Shown here: one piece after another, positions 1,287 through 58,670 of the stretch | Layout: each line of letters starts with the position of its first letter | How positions within the stretch are numbered: the stretch's first letter is position 1 | Assembly: GCA_002269645.1 (NCBI GenBank) | Contig: NIVC01001825.1 | Coordinates: forward strand, 1 to 60,204 | DNA from: Macrostomum lignano | Taxonomy: Eukaryota | DNA length: 60,204 bases | Direction of reading: 5' to 3' | Translations under genes and position numbers: made by a program | Notes under the pieces: generated by a model | What the model saw: only the letters and a program-made list of their open reading frames with translations | What the model was told of the DNA's origin: nothing | The model's database searches: none

Positions 1287-9003
<7,717 letters not shown>

Positions 9004-16918: not shown

Positions 16919-17186
16919 AAAAATTAAAGCATGTTTTTCGCAGGTTTTGCATCGTAAAAGAAGAAGATAAACAAGCACTCTGCGAGTTCAGTTGCTATGC
17001 GCCTTAATATTCGAATTCCAAGCGCGCACTTTATCGGCGACGGGGAGTCAATTTTGTATTTTTCTTGTTTTTTCGCAACTTGAGACATCTGGAAAATTGA
17101 CAGAGATGGCGCACAAAACATTTGATGGGAATTGTTGTTGCTGGGGTAGTGAGCTTTTTGTTAAAACTCAGAAGTTTGCTCAGAAG

Positions 17187-17192
17187 TTTATT
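17187..17192 (-). terminator. Possible polyadenylation signal of the neuropeptide gene
   Basis: AATAAA on the minus strand ~34 nt after the TGA. Confidence 0.4.
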
Positions 17193-17225
17193 TCTTGGAT
17201 GAGGTCGGGTGGGCGGGGGGCGGCT

Positions 17226-17585
17226 TCAGCCCCTCAGCGGGTGGAAGATGCCGCCGCGCTTCTTTCCGCGCAGAGGATAAAATTGGCGCTTCTTGTTGGC
17301 GCCGTGGCCGCGCGCCGGCAGAATGCCGTAGCGATTGGGCAGCTCAGCCTCCGAGCTCTGCGACATCTCGACTAGAGCGTCGGCCAGGAGTTGCATCTGG
17401 GCCGGCGTCAGCTCGAAGCCGGGGAACTGGCGGCCAGGCTCCGTGACCTCCTCGAGGCCTTCGTCAGCCTGGCGATGCGGCTGGCGACTCTCGTAGCCGT
17501 GATGAGGCACCCGGGAGGCTGGGGCCGCCAGAGTGGCGCCAATTAGTAGCGCGGCCGATACGACCAGAACGGAGACTGCGGACAT
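17226..17585 (-). CDS. Neuropeptide prohormone (119 aa) encoding two FxPLRamide peptides
   Basis: Signal peptide MSAVSVLVVSAALLIGATLA|AP, acidic spacer, then ...KKR-QFYPLRG-KKR-GGIFHPLRG-stop. This gives convertase sites, two Gly amide donors and an N-terminal Gln (pyroGlu); codons are GC-rich like the other true exons. Confidence 0.9.
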   Translation of the reverse strand: MSAVSVLVVSAALLIGATLAAPASRVPHHGYESRQPHRQADEGLEEVTEPGRQFPGFELTPAQMQLLADALVEMSQSSEAELPNRYGILPARGHGANKKRQFYPLRGKKRGGIFHPLRG

Positions 17586-17712
17586 TGCGGCTTCAGTTCT
17601 AACGACTGCTCAGGCTGTTCTGCTCAGTATAGAGAGTGAGACTCCAATAGATGCAGCGGGGAAGCTGACTGCTCGAGGATGGGGTAGTGGCCTTTATCCA
17701 GATGGGAGCCGG

Positions 17713-17723
17713 CCTGATTGGCT
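17713..17723 (-). promoter_or_regulatory. NF-Y-type CCAAT box upstream of the neuropeptide gene
   Basis: Minus strand AGCCAATCAGG ~130 nt upstream of the ATG; motif match only. Confidence 0.35.
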
Positions 17724-39532: not shown

Positions 39533-39629
39533 GTTTTTCCCAACAAAGCAGTTCTATGAAGTGCTTCGTTTGTTCAGATCAAGTGGGTTATGTCGTTGAA
39601 ACCAAGTGGCTCGTTGATATCATTACTAT

Positions 39630-40354
39630 GTCACGTGACTCATTGATATCGTTAGTAAAGTCCCGTGACTCATTGATATCGTTAGTAAAGTCACGTGACT
39701 CATTGATATCGTTAGTAAAGTCACGTGACTCATTGATATCGTTAGTAAAGTCACGTGACTCATTGATATCGTTAGTAAAGTCACGTGACTCATTGATATC
39801 GTTAGTAAAGTCACGTGACTCATTGGTGTCGTTAGTAAAGTCACGTGACTCATTGGTGTCGTTAGTAAAGTCACGTGACTCATTGATGTCGTTAGTAAAG
39901 TCACGTGACTCATTGGTGTCGTTAGTAAAGTCACGTGACTCATTGGGGGCGTTAGTAAAGTCACGTGACTCATTGGTGTTGTTAGTAAAGTCACGTGACT
40001 CATTGGGGGCGTTAGTAAAGTCACGTGACTCATTGATATCGTTAGTAAAGTCACGTGACTCATTGGGGCGTTAGTAAAGTCACGTGACTCATTGGTGTTG
40101 TTAGTAAAGTCACGTGACTCATTGGGGGCGTTAGTAAAGTCACGTGACTCTGGTGTCGTTAGTAAAGTCACGTGACTCATTGGTGTCGTTAGTAAAGTCA
40201 CGTGACTCATTGGGGGCGTTAGTAAAGTCACGTGACTCTGGTGTCGTTAGTAAAGTCACGTGACTCATTGGTGTCGTTAGTAAAGTCACGTGACTCATTG
40301 GGGGCGTTAGTAAAGTCACGTGACTCATTGATATCGTTAGTAAAGTCACGTGAC
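39630..40354. repeat. 30-bp minisatellite carrying the GTCACGTGAC palindrome, ~25 copies
   Basis: Unit GTCACGTGACTCATTG(ATAT/GTGT/GGGG)CGTTAGTAAA. Confidence 0.97.
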
Positions 40355-42638: not shown

Positions 42639-44438
42639 ATGTCTCCTGGAAGAACAGCACTAATAAGAGTATTCATAGTTTTATTGATTCTGCAGACATG
42701 GTGCCAGAGCTTGCGTCTGGACTCTGCTGCTGCCAACCAGAACTGGCTGAGCAATGCGCAGCCACTGACTGGAGGAGTCACGGTGAGATGGAGCTGTTTT
42801 TGTGTTCTCTTGAATCACATCCATTCACCAAATTTAAAGAAATCACAACCCATTTACTAATTTTACATAAATCGCATCTTTCACCAACTTGAGAAATCAC
42901 ATCTATTCACCAACTCGAGAAATCACATCTATTCACCAACTCGAGAAATCACATCTATTCACTAACTTGAGAAATCACATCTATTCACCAAGTTGAGAAA
43001 TCACATCTACTCACTAACTTGAGAAATCACATCTATTCACCAAGTTGAGAAATCACATCTACTCACTAACTTGAAAAATCACATCTAATTCACCAAGTTG
43101 AGAAATCACATCTATTCACCAAGTTGAGAAATCACATCTATTCACCAAGTTGAGAAATCACATCTATTCACAAACTTGAGAAATCACATCCATTTACCAA
43201 CTTGAGAAATCACATCTATTCACCAACTTGAGACAAACATATCCATTCTTTAGAAAACTACCATGGAGCCAATGGAAACTTTCACCGGAAGTACTCCTAC
43301 GTCTGAAGCAACGGAAGCTGCCACCGGAAGTACATCTGAAACAATGGAAACTGCCACCGGAAGTACATATGAAACAATGGAAACTGCCACCGGAAGTACA
43401 TATGAAACAACGGAAATTGCCACCGGAAGTACATATGAAACAACGGAAATTGCCACCGGAAGTACATATGAAACAACGGAAATTGCCACCGGAAGCACGG
43501 CTAAGACAACAAAAATTACCTTCGGGACTACCGCTCAACAAACGGCCACTTTCACGACAACAATAGGCTTACTAACGGCTACTCCCACCATCAGGATGAC
43601 TGCGACAACAACAGGACCCACGCTTCAACCGCACACGAGGTCCACCTTCCAGACTTCGTCGGAGGCTTCCACAACCATTCAGTCTTTAACCGGTTCTACC
43701 GTTGCTGGAACCACCGAAAGCACCATCGAAATCACACCCGGAAGCACCGCTGGAAGCACCACTGGAAGCACTTCCGGAAAAACCACCGGAAGCACCACTG
43801 GAAGCACTTCCGGAAGAACCACCGGAAGCACCTCCGGCAGCACCTCCAGAAGAACCACCGGAAGCACCTCCGGCAGCACCTCCGGAAGAACCACCGGAAG
43901 CACCTCTGGCAGCACCTCCAGAGGAACCACCGGAAGCTCCACCGGAAGAACCACCGGAAGCACCTCTGGCAGCACCTCCAGAGGAACCACCGGAAGCTCC
44001 ACCGGAAGAACCACCGGAAGCACCTCTGGCAGCACCTCCAGAGGAACCACCGGAAGCTCCACCGGAAGCACCACCGGAAGCACCTCCGGCAGCACCTCCG
44101 GAAGAACCACCGGAAGCACCTCTGGCAGCACCTCCAGAGGAACCACCGGAAGCTCCACCGGAAGAACCACCGGAAGCACCTCTGGCAGCACCTCCAGAGG
44201 AACCACCGGAAGCTCCACCGGAAGCACCACCGGAAGCACCCTGTCAACGGAAGCTTCCACAATGGAAGCGTCGACAACAGACTCGGAGCTGGAAGGCAGT
44301 CCAGAACGCAGTCCCCGACTATTGGCCATCATCGGTGGCGCGGTGCTGGCGCTAATGTCGCTGACGGCGTCGGTGCTGCTGATTCTATTCGCAACTTCTC
44401 GTCGGCGACGTCGGAGAAGGTGCGAAAATGCGGCCTGA
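42639..44438 (+). CDS. Orphan mucin-like Thr/Ser/Gly-rich single-pass (type I) membrane protein, ~442 aa
   Basis: Exon 42639-42782 (signal-like MSPGRTALIRVFIVLLILQTWCQS, ACG|gtgaga) joins exon 43254-44438 (ctttag|AAA ACT ACC ATG), both phase 0. It encodes a T/S/G repeat stalk, TM helix LLAIIGGAVLALMSLTASVLLILFA, stop-transfer RRRRRRR and tail CENAA. A possible donor AG|gtgcga at 44419/44420 means the tail could be longer. Confidence 0.75.
42888..43232. repeat. 26-bp minisatellite in the mucin-like gene intron
   Basis: Unit TTGAGAAATCACATCTATTCACCAA(C/G). Confidence 0.93.
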
Positions 44439-44860: not shown

Positions 44861-46459
44861 CTAGCAATCCAAGCTCCTAGGAGCCAAGGCAACGCACTTT
44901 GAAATTGTCCCACAATTAAGTCTGTCACTATGTCGATGAAACTGACAGTTTGGGTTGAAAGTCAAAGATTGTCGAATTTTCTTCTTCACTTTCGAGAGCC
45001 CCATTGAGTTGCTTCTCGAGTGGCGTGAGCGAGACTTCAACGGCTCACTTGACAGCGCCAACTGCTTGGGCTTGCGTGCTGGTTTATAAAAAGTGCAAAA
45101 TAAGAGGCGATCTAAATTTGGACAAAGAATTCCATCTGACTGCAGAATTGGTTAATCTTGAAGGTGTCTTAAACTTCAGTAAAGCAGGTGAGTTAGCCTT
45201 ACAAAATCAGTGTTCGGTATAGAGTCCTGTAGATGGGTCAGCCTCGGGTCATGCAGATGGGTCAGCCTCGGGTCATGCAAATGGGTCAGCCTCTGTTCAT
45301 GCAGATGGGCCTCGGGTCATGCAGATGGGTCAGCCTCGGGTCATGCAAATGGGTCAGCCTCGGGTCATGCAGATGGGTCAGCCTCGGGTCATGCAGATGG
45401 GTCAGCCTCGGGTCATGTAGATGAGTCAGCCTCGGATCATGCAGATGGGTCAGACTCTGGGTCATGCAGATGGGTCAGCCTCGGGTCATGCAGATGGGTC
45501 AGCCTCGGGTCATGCAGATGGGTCAGCCTTGGGTCATGCAGATGGGTCAGCCTCGGGTCATGCAGATGGGTCAGCCTCGGGTCATGCAGATGGGTCAGCC
45601 TCGGATCATGCAGATGGGTCAGACTCTGGGTCATGCAGATGGGTCAGCCTCGGGTCATGCAGATGGGTCAGCCTCGGGTCATGTAGATGAGTCAGCCTCT
45701 GTTCATGCAGATGGGCCTCGGGTCATGCAGATGGGTCAGCCTCGGGTCATGCAGATGGGTCAGCCTCGGGTCATGCAGATGGGTCAGCCTCGGGTCATGC
45801 AGATGGGTCAGCCTCGGGTCATGCAGATGGGTCAGCCTCGGATCATGCAGATGGGTCAGACTCTGGGTCATGCAGATGGGTCAGCCTCGGGTCATGCAAA
45901 TGGGTCAGCCTCGGGTCATGCAGATGGGTCAGCCTCGGGTCATGCAGATGGGTCAGCCTCGGGTCATGCAAATGGGTCAGCCTCGGGTCATGCAGATGGG
46001 TCAGACTCTGGGTCATGCAGATGGGTCAGCCTCGGGTCATGCAAATGGGTCAGCCTCGGGTCATGCAGATGGGTCAGCCTCGGGTCATGCAGATGGGTCA
46101 GCCTCGGGTCATGCAGATGGGTCAGCCTCGGGTCATGCAGATGGGTCAGCCTCGGGTCATGCAGATGGGTCAGCCTCGGGTCATGCAGATGGGTCAGCCT
46201 CGGGTCATGCAGATGGGTCAGCCTCGGGTCATGCAAATGGGTCAGCCTCGGGTCATGCAGATGGGTCAGCCTCGGGTCATGCAGATGGGTCAGCCTCGGG
46301 TCATCCTATGCAAATGGGACAGCCTGATCGAGTTATACCACATTAATCGGTCGGCAATGGCCCCTCATGCAGCACCTCACTTTGTCGCCAGTCTGTCTGT
46401 CCAGTTCGCTTGGGCAGTTTTTTCGTCCATTTTTCCATCAATTTGCAAATTTTCAGTTT
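44861..46459 (-). CDS. Candidate two exons of an unrecognised basic protein or spliced ncRNA
   Basis: Exon 46381-46459 (cttgtgcttttcttag|AAA ... AAA|gtgagg) joins exon 44861-45078 (ttttgcactttttataaaccag|CA) in phase 1. The frame gives ...MEKWTKKLPKRTGQTDWRQTRKPKQLALSSEPLKSRSRHSRSNSMGLSKVKKKIRQ...LDC*. Confidence 0.3.
45231..46305. repeat. 24-bp minisatellite, ~45 copies
   Basis: Unit GGGTCATGCA(G/A)ATGGGTCAGCCTC. Confidence 0.97.
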
Positions 46460-46869
46460 CTAAGAAAAGCACAAGAAGCGCGGGGTACAGCAGGCCCCGA
46501 GGCATGCATCAAGTCGTCAGGTCGATCTTCTCCATGTAATGACAGTCCGCAACAAACGATGGGTGTTCGGCTTTTTTTAACTGAGGCCACAGCCGGACTC
46601 AATAATCACAGAGGTACATGTATCGTGCAGGTGGACTCCAGCCTTCAATTTTTCAGCTTTCGAGTTAGCATGTGCAGCCATAATTACATGGCATGGGACT
46701 CTTTATCGGCTGCATCACTGCCTTGCCATCAGAGAAGTGGATATCTTTGACTCGAGTCTTAATTGGCTTTTAAATCGCTTCACTCTTGCTGGGAATTCTT
46801 CCTATCGGTCTGTGGGGAATTTCTTCCCCTTTTCTATGGGGATTCTTGTTGAGTTTGTGGGGATTTCTC

Positions 46870-48028
46870 TTGCTCTCCGTCTCAATTGGTGGGGGAATTC
46901 TCCGTCTCAATCGGTGGGGGAATTCTCCGTCTCAATCGGTGGGGGAATTCTCCGTCTCAATCGGTGGGGGAATTCTCCGTCTCAATCGGTGGGGGAATTC
47001 TACGTCTCAATCGGTGGGGGAATTCTCCGTCTCAATCGGTGGGGGAATTCTCCATCTCAATCGGTGGGGGAATTCTCCGTCTCAATCGGTGGGGAATTCT
47101 CCATCTCAATCGGTGGGGGAATTCTCAATGTCAATCGGTGGGGAATTCTCCATCTCAATCGGTGGGGAATTCTCCGTCTCAATCGGTGGGGGAATTCTCC
47201 GTCTCAATCGGTGGGGGAATTCTCCGTCTCAATCGGTGGGGAAATCTCCGTCTCAATCGGTGGGGGAATTCTCCGTCTCAATCGGTGGGGGAATTCTCCG
47301 TCTCAATCGGTGGGGGAATTCTCCGTATCAATCGGTGGGGGAATTCTCCGTCTCAATCGGTGGGGGAATTCTCCGTCTCAATCGGTGGGGGAATTCTCAA
47401 TCTCAATCGGTGGGGAATTCTCCGTCTCAATCGGTGGGGGAATTCTTCGTCTCAATCGGTCGGGAATGCTCCGTCTCAATCAGTGGGGAATTCTCCGTCT
47501 CAATCGGTGGGGGAATTCTCCGTCTCAATCGGTGGGGAATTCTCCATCTCAATCGGTGGGGAATTCTCCGTCTCAATCGGTGGGGGAATTCTTCGTCTCA
47601 ATCGGTGGGGAATGCTCCGTCTCAATCGGTGGGGAATTCTCCATCTCAATCGGTGGGGAATTCTCCGTCTCAATCGGTGGGGGAATTCTTCGTCTCAATC
47701 GGTGGGGGAATTCTCCGTCTCAATCGGTGGGGAATTCTCCGTCTCAATCGGTGGGGGAATTCTCCGTCTCAATTGGTGGGGGAATTCTCCGTCTCAATCG
47801 GTGGGGGAATTCTCCGTCTCAATCGGTGGGGGAATTCTTCGTCTCAATCGGTGGGGGAATTCTCCGTCTCAATCGGTGGGGGAATTCTCCGTCTCAATCG
47901 GTGGGGGAATTCTTCGTCTCAATCGGTGGGGAATGCTCCGTCTCAATCGGTGGGGGAATTCTCCGTCTCAATCGGTGGGGGAATTCTTCGTCTCAATCGG
48001 TGGGGAATGCTCCGTCTCAATCGGTGGG
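46870..48028. repeat. 26-28-bp minisatellite varying in G-run length
   Basis: Unit G(4-6)AATTCTCCGTCTCAATCGGT, with an EcoRI site in most units. Confidence 0.96.
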
Positions 48029-49725
48029 AATTTATTGTCTCATTTCAGGGGGAATTCTACATCCCTTTACATAGGGAATTTTGTCCATAATTCTGTTTCA
48101 TATTTTGGCAGAATTTATCTAAAAATGAGCAAGACCAGCAAACAAGGTGAATAACTTTATAATCGCATTTACAATAGACTAATAATGATATAGTAAGTAC
48201 ACGGGTATAAACTTTCCAGTGTTCTCAATTTTATTCCTTTATTTTTTCTTTTTATTTATAACCAAAATCGGCTCGACTGGTCATTGAAAAAGTCATTCCA
48301 TTTTGAGAATAGAATTAATTAATGTCAGGGTATACAGTTGTGAAAAAGCCTGTTTAAGATAAGCGATAATAACAATATTGTGTAACTATAATTCATGCTC
48401 AGTAAGCGATAATTGTTAGTCTCAGTGATCCACTGTTGGCGTCCAGCCATTCATAAAATTGAAATTCAAATTCACAAACAAAGAGTGGCATTAATCATAA
48501 CAAAAACTGTCAATTTGACTCCGGTTAAGGAGGCCAATATTCTGGTTATTAAGATAATGTTGTTACCATTAGTAATTCCGACATTATAACACAATGCATG
48601 CTTTAATAATAGTTATTAAACTTCACCATTATAAGTGTGCAGTGCAAATTATGATTATTATGACTATTATTATAAAATTAAAAAATCGCTTCCAAGTCAA
48701 ATAGTATAACAAATAAATTAAATTCGAGAGCGCACAGTTGTATAAACTAAAGCAGACAGGCAAATCAACACTTAGATTTAGCGAAATTAAACAAATTCAA
48801 ATCAATGAAGAGTCTTTGTGCGAAAAACTCCTATAGAAAAGTTTTAACCTCTCTAAAGCCACTTTGAAGTTATATATAAATCATAGTATTATTATTTGAG
48901 TCTGAGATGATTGGTAATTGCAGTTAAATTATCACTACTTTATTCGATTCAATATAACAATAAATATTAATCATATTATTAATAACTCGAACAAAAGTGC
49001 TCACATATAAAGATCAAAGATATTGTGAATTATAATATAATATATCTAGATATCAACTCTGCCAAGAGGCTCCATCATATAAACAACAAATAACTGTGCA
49101 AGTGCGCCAGAAAAAACTTCTGATTTTTAAATAAAAAACTCTTAAATAATGTCGTTTGTTATAATAATATTAATAATAATATTAAAACAATTTTTTTCGG
49201 TTTGATGCACACTATTTCATGTCAAAAAAATCTTGAATTGATAAAACACTTCTTTCATTATTAATAAGAGACACAAGCAACAAATGGAAACGAAGCAATG
49301 ACTAGCTTATAAGTAGAAATATATAAAACACGTGACACAATATTCCAGATATAATAAGAATTATTGCACAGGTAAGAAGCTGTACTTGCCGTTTACTAAG
49401 ACAGACAGGTAGCGCAGCTGATGAGGCTATTATTGCAATTATTATTGCTCTATAAGTGTACTATATGATAGATAAGTGTATAAAGCATAACAATAACAAT
49501 AGCTTACAATAAGAATAAAATAGAACACTAGCATTTCTAATCTCAGGTGCTTGACAACAATTAGCAACAACAGAGATTTGAGTAGGAGAGGGTCGAGAGG
49601 GAGGCCGATTGGGGATAGGGGGTAGGGCAGCTCTCTGTTCCAGATTCATTCAGTCATGCCAACAACAGGTAGAGATAGAACTGCCAGTTACATTATTAAT
49701 AATAATTTTTATTGCACTCTAGCAT

Positions 49726-56282
<6,557 letters not shown>

Positions 56283-56890: not shown

Positions 56891-57639
56891 CCTCTCAAAT
56901 GCTCGCTCGGGTCGAAAACCCAGCCAGCCGAGTTCAAGATCTAAGAGAGAGAGAGAACAGGAAAAGAAGACGGAGATGAAGAGAGAGAGAGAGAGAGATA
57001 AGACGCACAGGACAGGGAGCACCGGAAGACAGACGTGGGGCGTGTCGGAGACGCCACAACCCCCTCCATCCATCCTAGCCATCAGTTCAGACCTCAGGCC
57101 TTCAGGCCTCGCCAACTACAGCAAGGCATTACAGGGCGGGGCGCAGTGTGCGGCAGAGAGGCTGGGTGGAGGATGGAGAGAAGCATTTCAAGCAAGAAAG
57201 AGGCAGCAACGGCGGCGGCGGCGGCAGTAGCAGTTGAGGGGGCAAGAAAGGAACATGCAAAAATAAGACGCATGGCATGGCATGAAAGAATGGCTCCGGT
57301 TGCTGCTGGAGCAGATGCGCAGTGGCAGCCCCACCCATGCAGGACAGGGGGGGGGGGGGGCTTACCCCGCCCAAAACCTGGGCAATTGCCGGTCAAATTA
57401 TCGTTTCATTAAATCCCAGAAATTTCAATTTTCATTTGCGCTTTCAGCGTGGAGGACAGCCGTTTGTCGGCCCAATCTAACACTAACTTCATCCTATTCC
57501 GGAGTGCGTTAACAAGGGCTTAGCTAACTATTACCAATGAGATTGAAGATTTTGGGATAGCGAACTCTTTGGACCTGTGAAGGTTTGAGATTCTGAAGTT
57601 GTTGATTGCGAATGTTGAGAATTGTGAATAAATGGGACC

Positions 57640-58670
57640 GTAAGTGCAGGGGATCACGAATGTAGGGGATCGCAAACATAGAGGATCGTGAATTCTAGCG
57701 ATCATGAATTTAAGGGATTGTGCATTCAAAAAGATTGTGAATTCAGACAATCGTGAATGAAGACAATCGTGAATGCAGGGGATCGTGAATCTAGGGGATT
57801 TTGAATGTGGGGGATCGTGAATGTAGAAAATTCTGAATGTAGGGGATCGTGAATGCTGACAACTGTGACTGTAGGGATCGTGAATGTAGAAAATTGTGAA
57901 TGCAGGGGATCGTGAATGTGGGGTATCGTGAATGTAGGGGATCGTGAATGTTGGGGATTTTGAATGTAAGGGATTCTGATCTGAATGTAGGGGATCGTGA
58001 ATGTAGACAATTGTGAATGTAGACAATTGTGAATGTAGACAATTGTGAATGTAGACAATTGTGAATGTAGGGGATCGTGAATGTAGACAATTGTGAATGC
58101 AGGGGATCGTGAATGCAGGGGATTGCGAATGCGTGGTATCCTCAATGTAGGGGATTGTGAATGTAGACAATTGTGAATGCAGGGGATCGTGAATGCAGGG
58201 GATTGCGAATGCGTGGTATCCTCAATGTAGGGGATCGTGAATGTAGACAATTGTGAATGCAGGGGATCGTGAATGCAGGGGATTGCGAATGCGGGGTATC
58301 GTAAATGTAGGGAATCGTGAATGTAGGGGATCGTGAATGTAGACAATCGTGAATGTAGACAATCGTGAATGTAGACAATCGTGAATGTAGGGGATCGTGA
58401 ATGTGAACAATTCTGAATGTAGACAATTGTAAATGCAGAGGATCGTGAATGCAAGGGATTGCGAATGCAGGGTATCGTAAATGTAGGGAATCGTGAATGT
58501 AGGGGATCGTGAATGTAGACAATCGTGAATGTAGGGGATCGTGAATGTAAACAATTCTAAATGTAGACAATTGTGAATGTAGGGAATTGTGAATTCAGAA
58601 GATCGTGAATGCAGGGGATCGTGAATGTAGAGAATTGTGAATTCAGATGATCGTGAATGCAGGGGATTGT
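57640..58670. repeat. 16-bp minisatellite with two main variants
   Basis: GTGAATG(T/C)AGGGGATC and GTGAATGTAGACAAT(T/C). Confidence 0.93.

Follow-up and report, generated by a model that had tools for sequence, protein, structure and literature searches.

Does the short open reading frame (ORF) at positions 17226 to 17585 of a Macrostomum lignano contig encode a genuine precursor of amidated peptides, and to which family of neuropeptides would its products belong? The window analyzed is the entire 60,204-bp contig NIVC01001825.1 of the GCA_002269645.1 assembly (Mlig_3_7), and the suggestion of an earlier note on this DNA that the host might be a flatworm or another non-arthropod is confirmed. 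The ORF runs from ATG to TGA on the minus strand, a strand that the note had not stated, and comprises 119 codons in a single exon, with the TGA at 17226-17228. The signal peptide, the two KKR sites, and the two Gly-extended peptides, which had been noticed in this interval before, are all present. The translated product of 119 aa is MSAVSVLVVSAALLIGATLAAPASRVPHHGYESRQPHRQADEGLEEVTEPGRQFPGFELTPAQMQLLADALVEMSQSSEAELPNRYGILPARGHGANKKRQFYPLRGKKRGGIFHPLRG, and its layout is MSAVSVLVVSAALLIGATLA / APASRVPHHGYESRQPHRQADEGLEEVTEPGRQFPGFELTPAQMQLLADALVEMSQSSEAELPNRYGILPARGHGAN / KKR / QFYPLRG / KKR / GGIFHPLRG / stop. As judged from the sequence, this is very probably a real gene for a secreted precursor, from which two peptides would be processed and amidated. 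The features of the locus are as follows, with the basis of each given in brackets.

17226 to 17585, minus strand: complete coding sequence (CDS) of the predicted prepropeptide (ORF translation, copies in the assembly, GC contrast).

17526 to 17585, minus strand: predicted signal peptide, aa 1-20, MSAVSVLVVSAALLIGATLA (hydropathy, AlphaFold helix at 3-18, -3/-1 small-residue rule).

17295 to 17525, minus strand: pro-region or spacer, aa 21-97 (copy alignment, composition, AlphaFold).

17307 to 17330, minus strand: putative degenerate third copy of the motif, YGILPARG, aa 86-93 (read from the sequence, motif scan).

17286 to 17294, minus strand: first tribasic convertase site, KKR, aa 98-100 (sequence).

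17265 to 17285, minus strand: peptide 1 with its amidation donor, QFYPLRG, aa 101-107 (sequence, invariant in all three genomic copies).

17256 to 17264, minus strand: second tribasic convertase site, KKR, aa 108-110 (sequence).

17229 to 17255, minus strand: peptide 2 with its amidation donor, GGIFHPLRG, aa 111-119, then the stop (sequence, invariant in all three copies).

17187 to 17192, minus strand: AATAAA, a presumed polyadenylation signal, 33 nt past the stop (sequence, conserved in NIVC01001430.1).

17693 to 17721, minus strand: putative core promoter with a CCAAT box at 17717-17721 and a TATA-like GATAAA at 17693-17698 (inference from sequence).

The N-terminal residues 1-20 are uncharged and hydrophobic, with a mean Kyte-Doolittle value of 2.2-2.5 per 9-mer. 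They end in TLA, followed by AP, and under the -3/-1 small-residue rule the signal peptide would be cleaved after TLA. The AlphaFold model built from the single sequence has a pTM of 0.23 and contains helices only at aa 3-18 and 61-76, the remainder being coil. The spacer (aa 21-97) is acidic, cysteine-free, and mostly coil with the one helix at aa 61-76, and a Pfam search with the precursor returned no domain match. At the C-terminus, the TGA directly follows aa 119, so the Gly-stop ending of GGIFHPLRG was read correctly in the earlier note. A predicted signal peptide, basic-flanked Gly-extended peptides, repeated copies, and the lack of a globular domain, which together characterize amidated multi-copy neuropeptide precursors in general, are all found here. 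A small globular secreted protein or toxin was also considered and was ruled out by the zero cysteines and the pTM of 0.23.

The spacer segment YGILPARG has the form hydrophobic-x-P-x-R-G, and its I-L-P-A-R-G can be set against the F-Y-P-L-R-G and F-H-P-L-R-G of the two peptides. It is preceded by NR and followed by H, or by R in the copy on NIVC01001826.1, so it lacks canonical cleavage sites. To judge by these residues, it is probably a relic copy that is not released. Another stretch of the spacer, at 17427-17441 on the minus strand (aa 49-57), reads PGR-QFPGFE, and its R-QF-P start echoes KKR-QFYPLRG. The likeness may be coincidental, or the stretch may be one more decayed peptide copy.

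Two peptides, each preceded by Lys or Arg plus Arg and each followed by Gly and then a dibasic site or a stop, were found in this ORF only among the 117 ORFs of the window that start with ATG and are at least 50 aa long. A comparable ORF, with two such peptides that are identical in their last three residues, occurred in 0 of 600 simulated 60-kb sequences (300 generated by a second-order Markov model of the window and 300 random sequences with the base composition of the ORF itself). Of the five residues shared by the peptide copies, four are encoded by different codons: TTT and TTC for F, CCT and CCG for P, CGC and AGG for R, and GGA and GGC for G. Thus, the repeat has been preserved as amino-acid sequence and did not arise from a recent duplication of DNA. 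The CDS has a GC content of 66% and a GC3 of 78%, compared with 44-57% for the flanking DNA. A number of ORFs of 50-127 aa overlap the precursor or lie antisense to it, for example those at 17195-17546 and 16992-17375 on the plus strand. They are by-products of the high GC content of the CDS and should not be annotated.

Long antisense ORFs in the same GC-rich stretch, together with the zero homologues found, might suggest that the precursor ORF is itself spurious or belongs to a non-coding transcript. We consider this barely credible, since the architecture does not arise in the simulations and the repeat persists despite the differing codons; the ORF is, moreover, intact in three diverged genomic copies with indels in their flanks, and its gene model is transcript-based and followed by a polyadenylation signal.

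As for the copies, an identical 119-aa protein is encoded on NIVC01001430.1, while the third copy, on NIVC01001826.1 (PAA63647.1, "hypothetical protein BOX15_Mlig029340g1"), differs from the window protein in two residues. GenBank calls the 119-aa gene at all three loci and names it a hypothetical protein only. The level of identity of the CDS among the copies is 98.6-100%, and that of 700 bp of the 3' flank is 92-96%, with indels. Five differences can be noted between the coding sequences, three of them synonymous and the other two being Q39L and H94R; none affects the peptides or the cleavage sites, and both amino-acid changes fall in the spacer. The neighbors common to the three loci are an EF-hand (reticulocalbin-like) gene and a BAR/PH/PID adaptor gene. 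The whole locus, comprising the precursor, EF-hand, and BAR/PH/PID genes, is present three times in the assembly with about 88-98% identity, and this triplication reflects the chromosome duplication in the DV1 line. Any RNAi or knock-out experiment on the precursor gene will have to reckon with all three copies. A motif scan of the window and of the NIVC01001430.1 and NIVC01001826.1 loci revealed no neighboring paralogue and no further exon with the motif.

The GenBank models of NIVC00000000 were built on RNA-seq data assembled into a transcriptome with guidance from the genome, with TransDecoder ORFs as a filter (PMC5730564). Given that the annotation was built from RNA-seq, a transcript of the precursor gene probably exists, and the gene is probably transcribed. 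Upstream of the ATG, the CCAAT and GATAAA elements lie at a distance of 108-136 nt and closely follow a (CTAT)133 microsatellite, and the 5' flank of 160 nt is 99-100% identical among the three copies.

The (CTAT)133 array begins about 155 bp upstream of the precursor ATG, and a 42-bp minisatellite lies about 400 bp downstream. Micro- and minisatellites occur throughout the contig (17741-18274, 18809-19142, 16464-16813, 5556-6009, and 10339-12717), with further arrays, among many, at 39556-40231, 45210-48154, 50539-53143, and 57520-58570. Most long "ORFs" of the window come from these arrays, which vary in length among the three genomic copies. The density of repeats agrees with the 15% of simple and tandem repeats reported for the M. 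lignano genome. Three other coding-like features of the contig can be mentioned. An exon-like ORF at 3056-3487 on the plus strand encodes a paired-type homeodomain over its first 46 positions (Pfam Homeodomain, E 2e-12), resembles the Pitx/Otx class, and is interrupted after RIRV by an intron. The minus strand carries, at 55367-55732, an exon of a heterotrimeric G-protein beta subunit (Pfam WD40_Gbeta, E 1e-37). The plus-strand ORF at 43263-44438 encodes a repetitive Thr/Ser/Gly-rich protein of 391 aa with no Pfam match, which ends with a hydrophobic segment and then RRRRRRR. In this it resembles membrane proteins of the mucin type, and the ORF could be either a genuine gene or an artefact of a minisatellite.

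The processing of the precursor would proceed as follows. The signal peptide would be removed co-translationally, a PC2-type prohormone convertase would cut after both KKR sites, and a carboxypeptidase would trim the basic residues. Peptidylglycine alpha-amidating monooxygenase would then turn the C-terminal Gly of each product into an amide, and the N-terminal Gln of peptide 1 would cyclize. Peptide 2, which already ends at the stop, would need the amidating enzyme only. The predicted end products are pQFYPLR-NH2 and GGIFHPLR-NH2. Most likely, both would serve as neuropeptides or peptide hormones and signal through a rhodopsin-beta G-protein-coupled receptor, although we infer the neuronal expression and the receptor class. 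Prohormone processing depends on pc2 in planarians (PMC2953531), and the M. lignano homologue of this gene is expressed in the nervous system, its knock-down being lethal (PMC4490696).

The sequence features indicate secretion and processing and not the cell type, and many gland-specific secreted transcripts exist in M. lignano. The peptides might therefore be non-neuronal products, likewise processed at KKR, such as a secretion of the prostate or another gland transferred at mating, an antimicrobial peptide, or an adhesive-gland peptide. This is improbable, since the combination of repeated short copies with a tribasic site and a Gly amidation donor is typical of neuropeptides, the peptides lack a cationic-amphipathic character and are very short, and the PC2 of M. 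lignano is neuronal.

A word-indexed search of 5.8 billion proteins matched the precursor to itself only. A phmmer search of 1.84 billion representative proteins returned the precursor itself and one Ala/Gly-rich repeat protein, but no homologue; the latter match was rejected as spurious, since the same 26 spacer residues were matched eight times. A query with the C-terminal 45 aa gave zero candidates and also missed its own source protein, so it is a weak negative. Small precursors seldom keep detectable similarity outside their peptides, and the absence of matches therefore says little.

The 51 prohormone sequences in the planarian table of Collins 2010 contain no LRG or PLRG, and an R-G-KR site occurs only in npy-9. 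This is the kind of catalogue comparison that the earlier note had proposed, and no LRG-containing sequence emerged from it. Nothing matching the precursor was present in the supplements of the Taenia npp and Schistosoma papers. Nothing relevant on the peptide sequences, "PLRamide", or Mlig029340 was found in openly accessible full-text papers. Within this literature, the precursor and its peptides are undescribed; a prior npp name is possible in the flatworm neuropeptide catalogues McVeigh 2009 and Koziol 2016, both of which reportedly cover M. lignano data. The earlier impression that the precursor is uncharacterised thus agrees with its GenBank status as a hypothetical protein and its absence from the open full text and from Collins 2010.

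The peptides might be orphan amidated neuropeptides restricted to Macrostomum or to flatworms, acting on a flatworm-specific receptor, with an ending that resembles tachykinins or natalisins by chance or convergence; the precursor mechanism would be unchanged and the family alone would differ. No precursor homologue appeared in any database searched and nothing in the planarian catalogue ends in LRG, most flatworm neuropeptide families are reported to be flatworm-restricted, orphan rhodopsin families have expanded in flatworms (PMC6114109), and no flatworm tachykinins have been reported (PMC6880623). Against this, both peptides match the spiralian tachykinin pentapeptide at all positions, and missing matches count for little in precursors this short. 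We put this orphan origin close to an even chance, though just under it.

The most economical family reading is nevertheless that of a divergent spiralian tachykinin-type (FxxxR-amide) ligand, an assignment we make tentatively and with clearly less than even confidence. The link to this family consists of a five-residue motif that fits natalisins too. Pro replaces Gly in both peptides, which therefore depart from the strict protostome tachykinin consensus F-x-G-x-R-amide. The earlier note took this consensus as the fixed ending of invertebrate tachykinins; however, spiralian tachykinins do not retain its Gly (Nassel 2019, Supplementary Table S1, PMC6880623). The examples from the same source (PMC6880623) include pEYGFHAVRa, which was chemically isolated from Anodonta, YGFHALRa and NYGFHALRa of Patinopecten, and Cragi-TK1-3 of Crassostrea (FGFAPMRa, ARFFGLRa, and FRFTALRa). 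Among annelids, they include MDSNQFFHMRa, QPPKGFAVVRa, and QPPQGFHAVRa of Platynereis, GPPMGFHFVRa of Hirudo, and LSRGFYAARa of Capitella. Since these ligands lack the conserved Gly, the M. lignano peptides fit ordinary spiralian tachykinin-type ligands. FYPLRa and FHPLRa agree with the relaxed spiralian form F-x-x-x-R-amide, with H, Y, or F at -4 and L, V, or M at -2. When compared with the table in PMC6880623, each of their residues is present at the same position in at least one spiralian tachykinin. FHPLRa differs from the scallop FHALRa by one change, Ala to Pro, and that Pro is found in the oyster Cragi-TK1 (FGFAPMRa).

According to the 2019 review, no tachykinins are known from flatworms (PMC6880623). 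For receptors, the evidence from flatworms is sparse: phylogeny placed a receptor in the tachykinin clade in one of two monogenean flatworms (PMC9645230). In Schistosoma and Schmidtea, only "weak or insignificant homology" links the receptors to a list in which tachykinin receptors figure (PMC3261222), and tachykinin is not mentioned in the receptor profile of Fasciola (PMC6114109). If the tachykinin assignment is right, the M. lignano peptides would be the first tachykinin-type ligands of Platyhelminthes, with an F-x-P-x-R-amide core that arose independently inside the spiralian tachykinin lineage. We regard this as possible but doubtful. It would mean that tachykinin signaling survived in early-branching free-living flatworms and that this core, held to be a natalisin signature, evolved separately within spiralian tachykinins.

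Flatworm neuropeptide repertoires are regarded as highly divergent, and tachykinins are listed in the 2019 review as undiscovered in the phylum (PMC6880623). The candidate ligand makes the retention of tachykinin signaling in flatworms directly testable, and the test is practical, since M. lignano is an early-branching flatworm amenable to transgenesis and RNAi. A positive outcome would fill a gap in the bilaterian neuropeptide map and provide a search motif for parasitic flatworms, in which peptide receptors are being pursued as drug targets. A negative outcome, useful but ordinary, would lengthen the list of lineage-specific amidated peptides in flatworms by one.

When the precursor is compared with known systems, its similarity to the npp, spp, mpl, ppl, ppp, and npy prohormones of Schmidtea mediterranea, which are processed by PC2, can be noted. 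Like them, it is small, would be secreted, and contains dibasic sites along with Gly donors for amidation. Unlike any of the 51 Schmidtea sequences of Collins 2010, however, the M. lignano peptides carry PLRG. The families in that planarian catalogue comprise RL/RM-amide, RF-amide, RRVV-amide, W-amide, pedal peptide, planarin, and NPY (Collins 2010).

With the pyrokinin/PRXamide (FxPRL-amide) system, the peptides share an aromatic residue, then Pro, then an amidated end of basic and aliphatic residues, as well as a multi-copy precursor. A pyrokinin-like prohormone, ppl-1, is known in planarians, and the planarian peptides of that group end in RL- or RM-amide (Collins 2010). The pyrokinin/PRXamide family was rejected, since the peptides lack F-x-P-R-[L/V/I/M]-amide and end in PLR-amide, with Arg last instead of second-to-last. 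The swap of the last two pyrokinin residues described earlier is thus read directly from the sequence (PLR-amide against PRL-amide). The C-terminal residues also rule out an LPXRF-amide peptide.

The natalisins call for closer comparison. The F-x-P-x-R-amide ending equals the consensus of the Drosophila natalisins DmNTL1-5, with the same five-residue C-terminal pattern of Pro and an amidated Arg (PMC6880623), and it might be proposed that the peptides are natalisin-type ligands of a branch older than Panarthropoda. The natalisin likeness pointed out before holds for this motif but not for length, copy number, or distribution. Natalisins have 15-24 residues and many-copy precursors, while the two copies here have 6 and 8 residues; they are known from arthropods and tardigrades only, presumably as descendants of a duplicated tachykinin gene of that lineage, and Pro at the same position is also present in an oyster tachykinin (PMC6880623). 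An older natalisin-type ligand, which the earlier note had offered as one option, is therefore the least economical explanation, and we consider it very improbable.

The tachykinin-type reading leads to the spiralian tachykinins as the remaining system. The M. lignano peptides are unlike them in having Pro at the third-from-last position in both copies and in lacking the Gly usual before Phe, in place of which Ile or Gln is found, and similarity at the level of the precursor is not detectable in the M. lignano protein. Otherwise, the resemblance concerns both the ligands and the way in which they would be produced. Spiralian tachykinins are amidated peptides of 6-10 aa, and the M. lignano peptides are likewise short, with the F-[H/Y/F]-x-[L/V/M]-R-amide ending. 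The precursors are small in both cases, those of spiralian tachykinins containing 2-7 dibasic-flanked copies, usually 2-3, and an N-terminal pGlu, as predicted for peptide 1, occurs among spiralian tachykinins as well.
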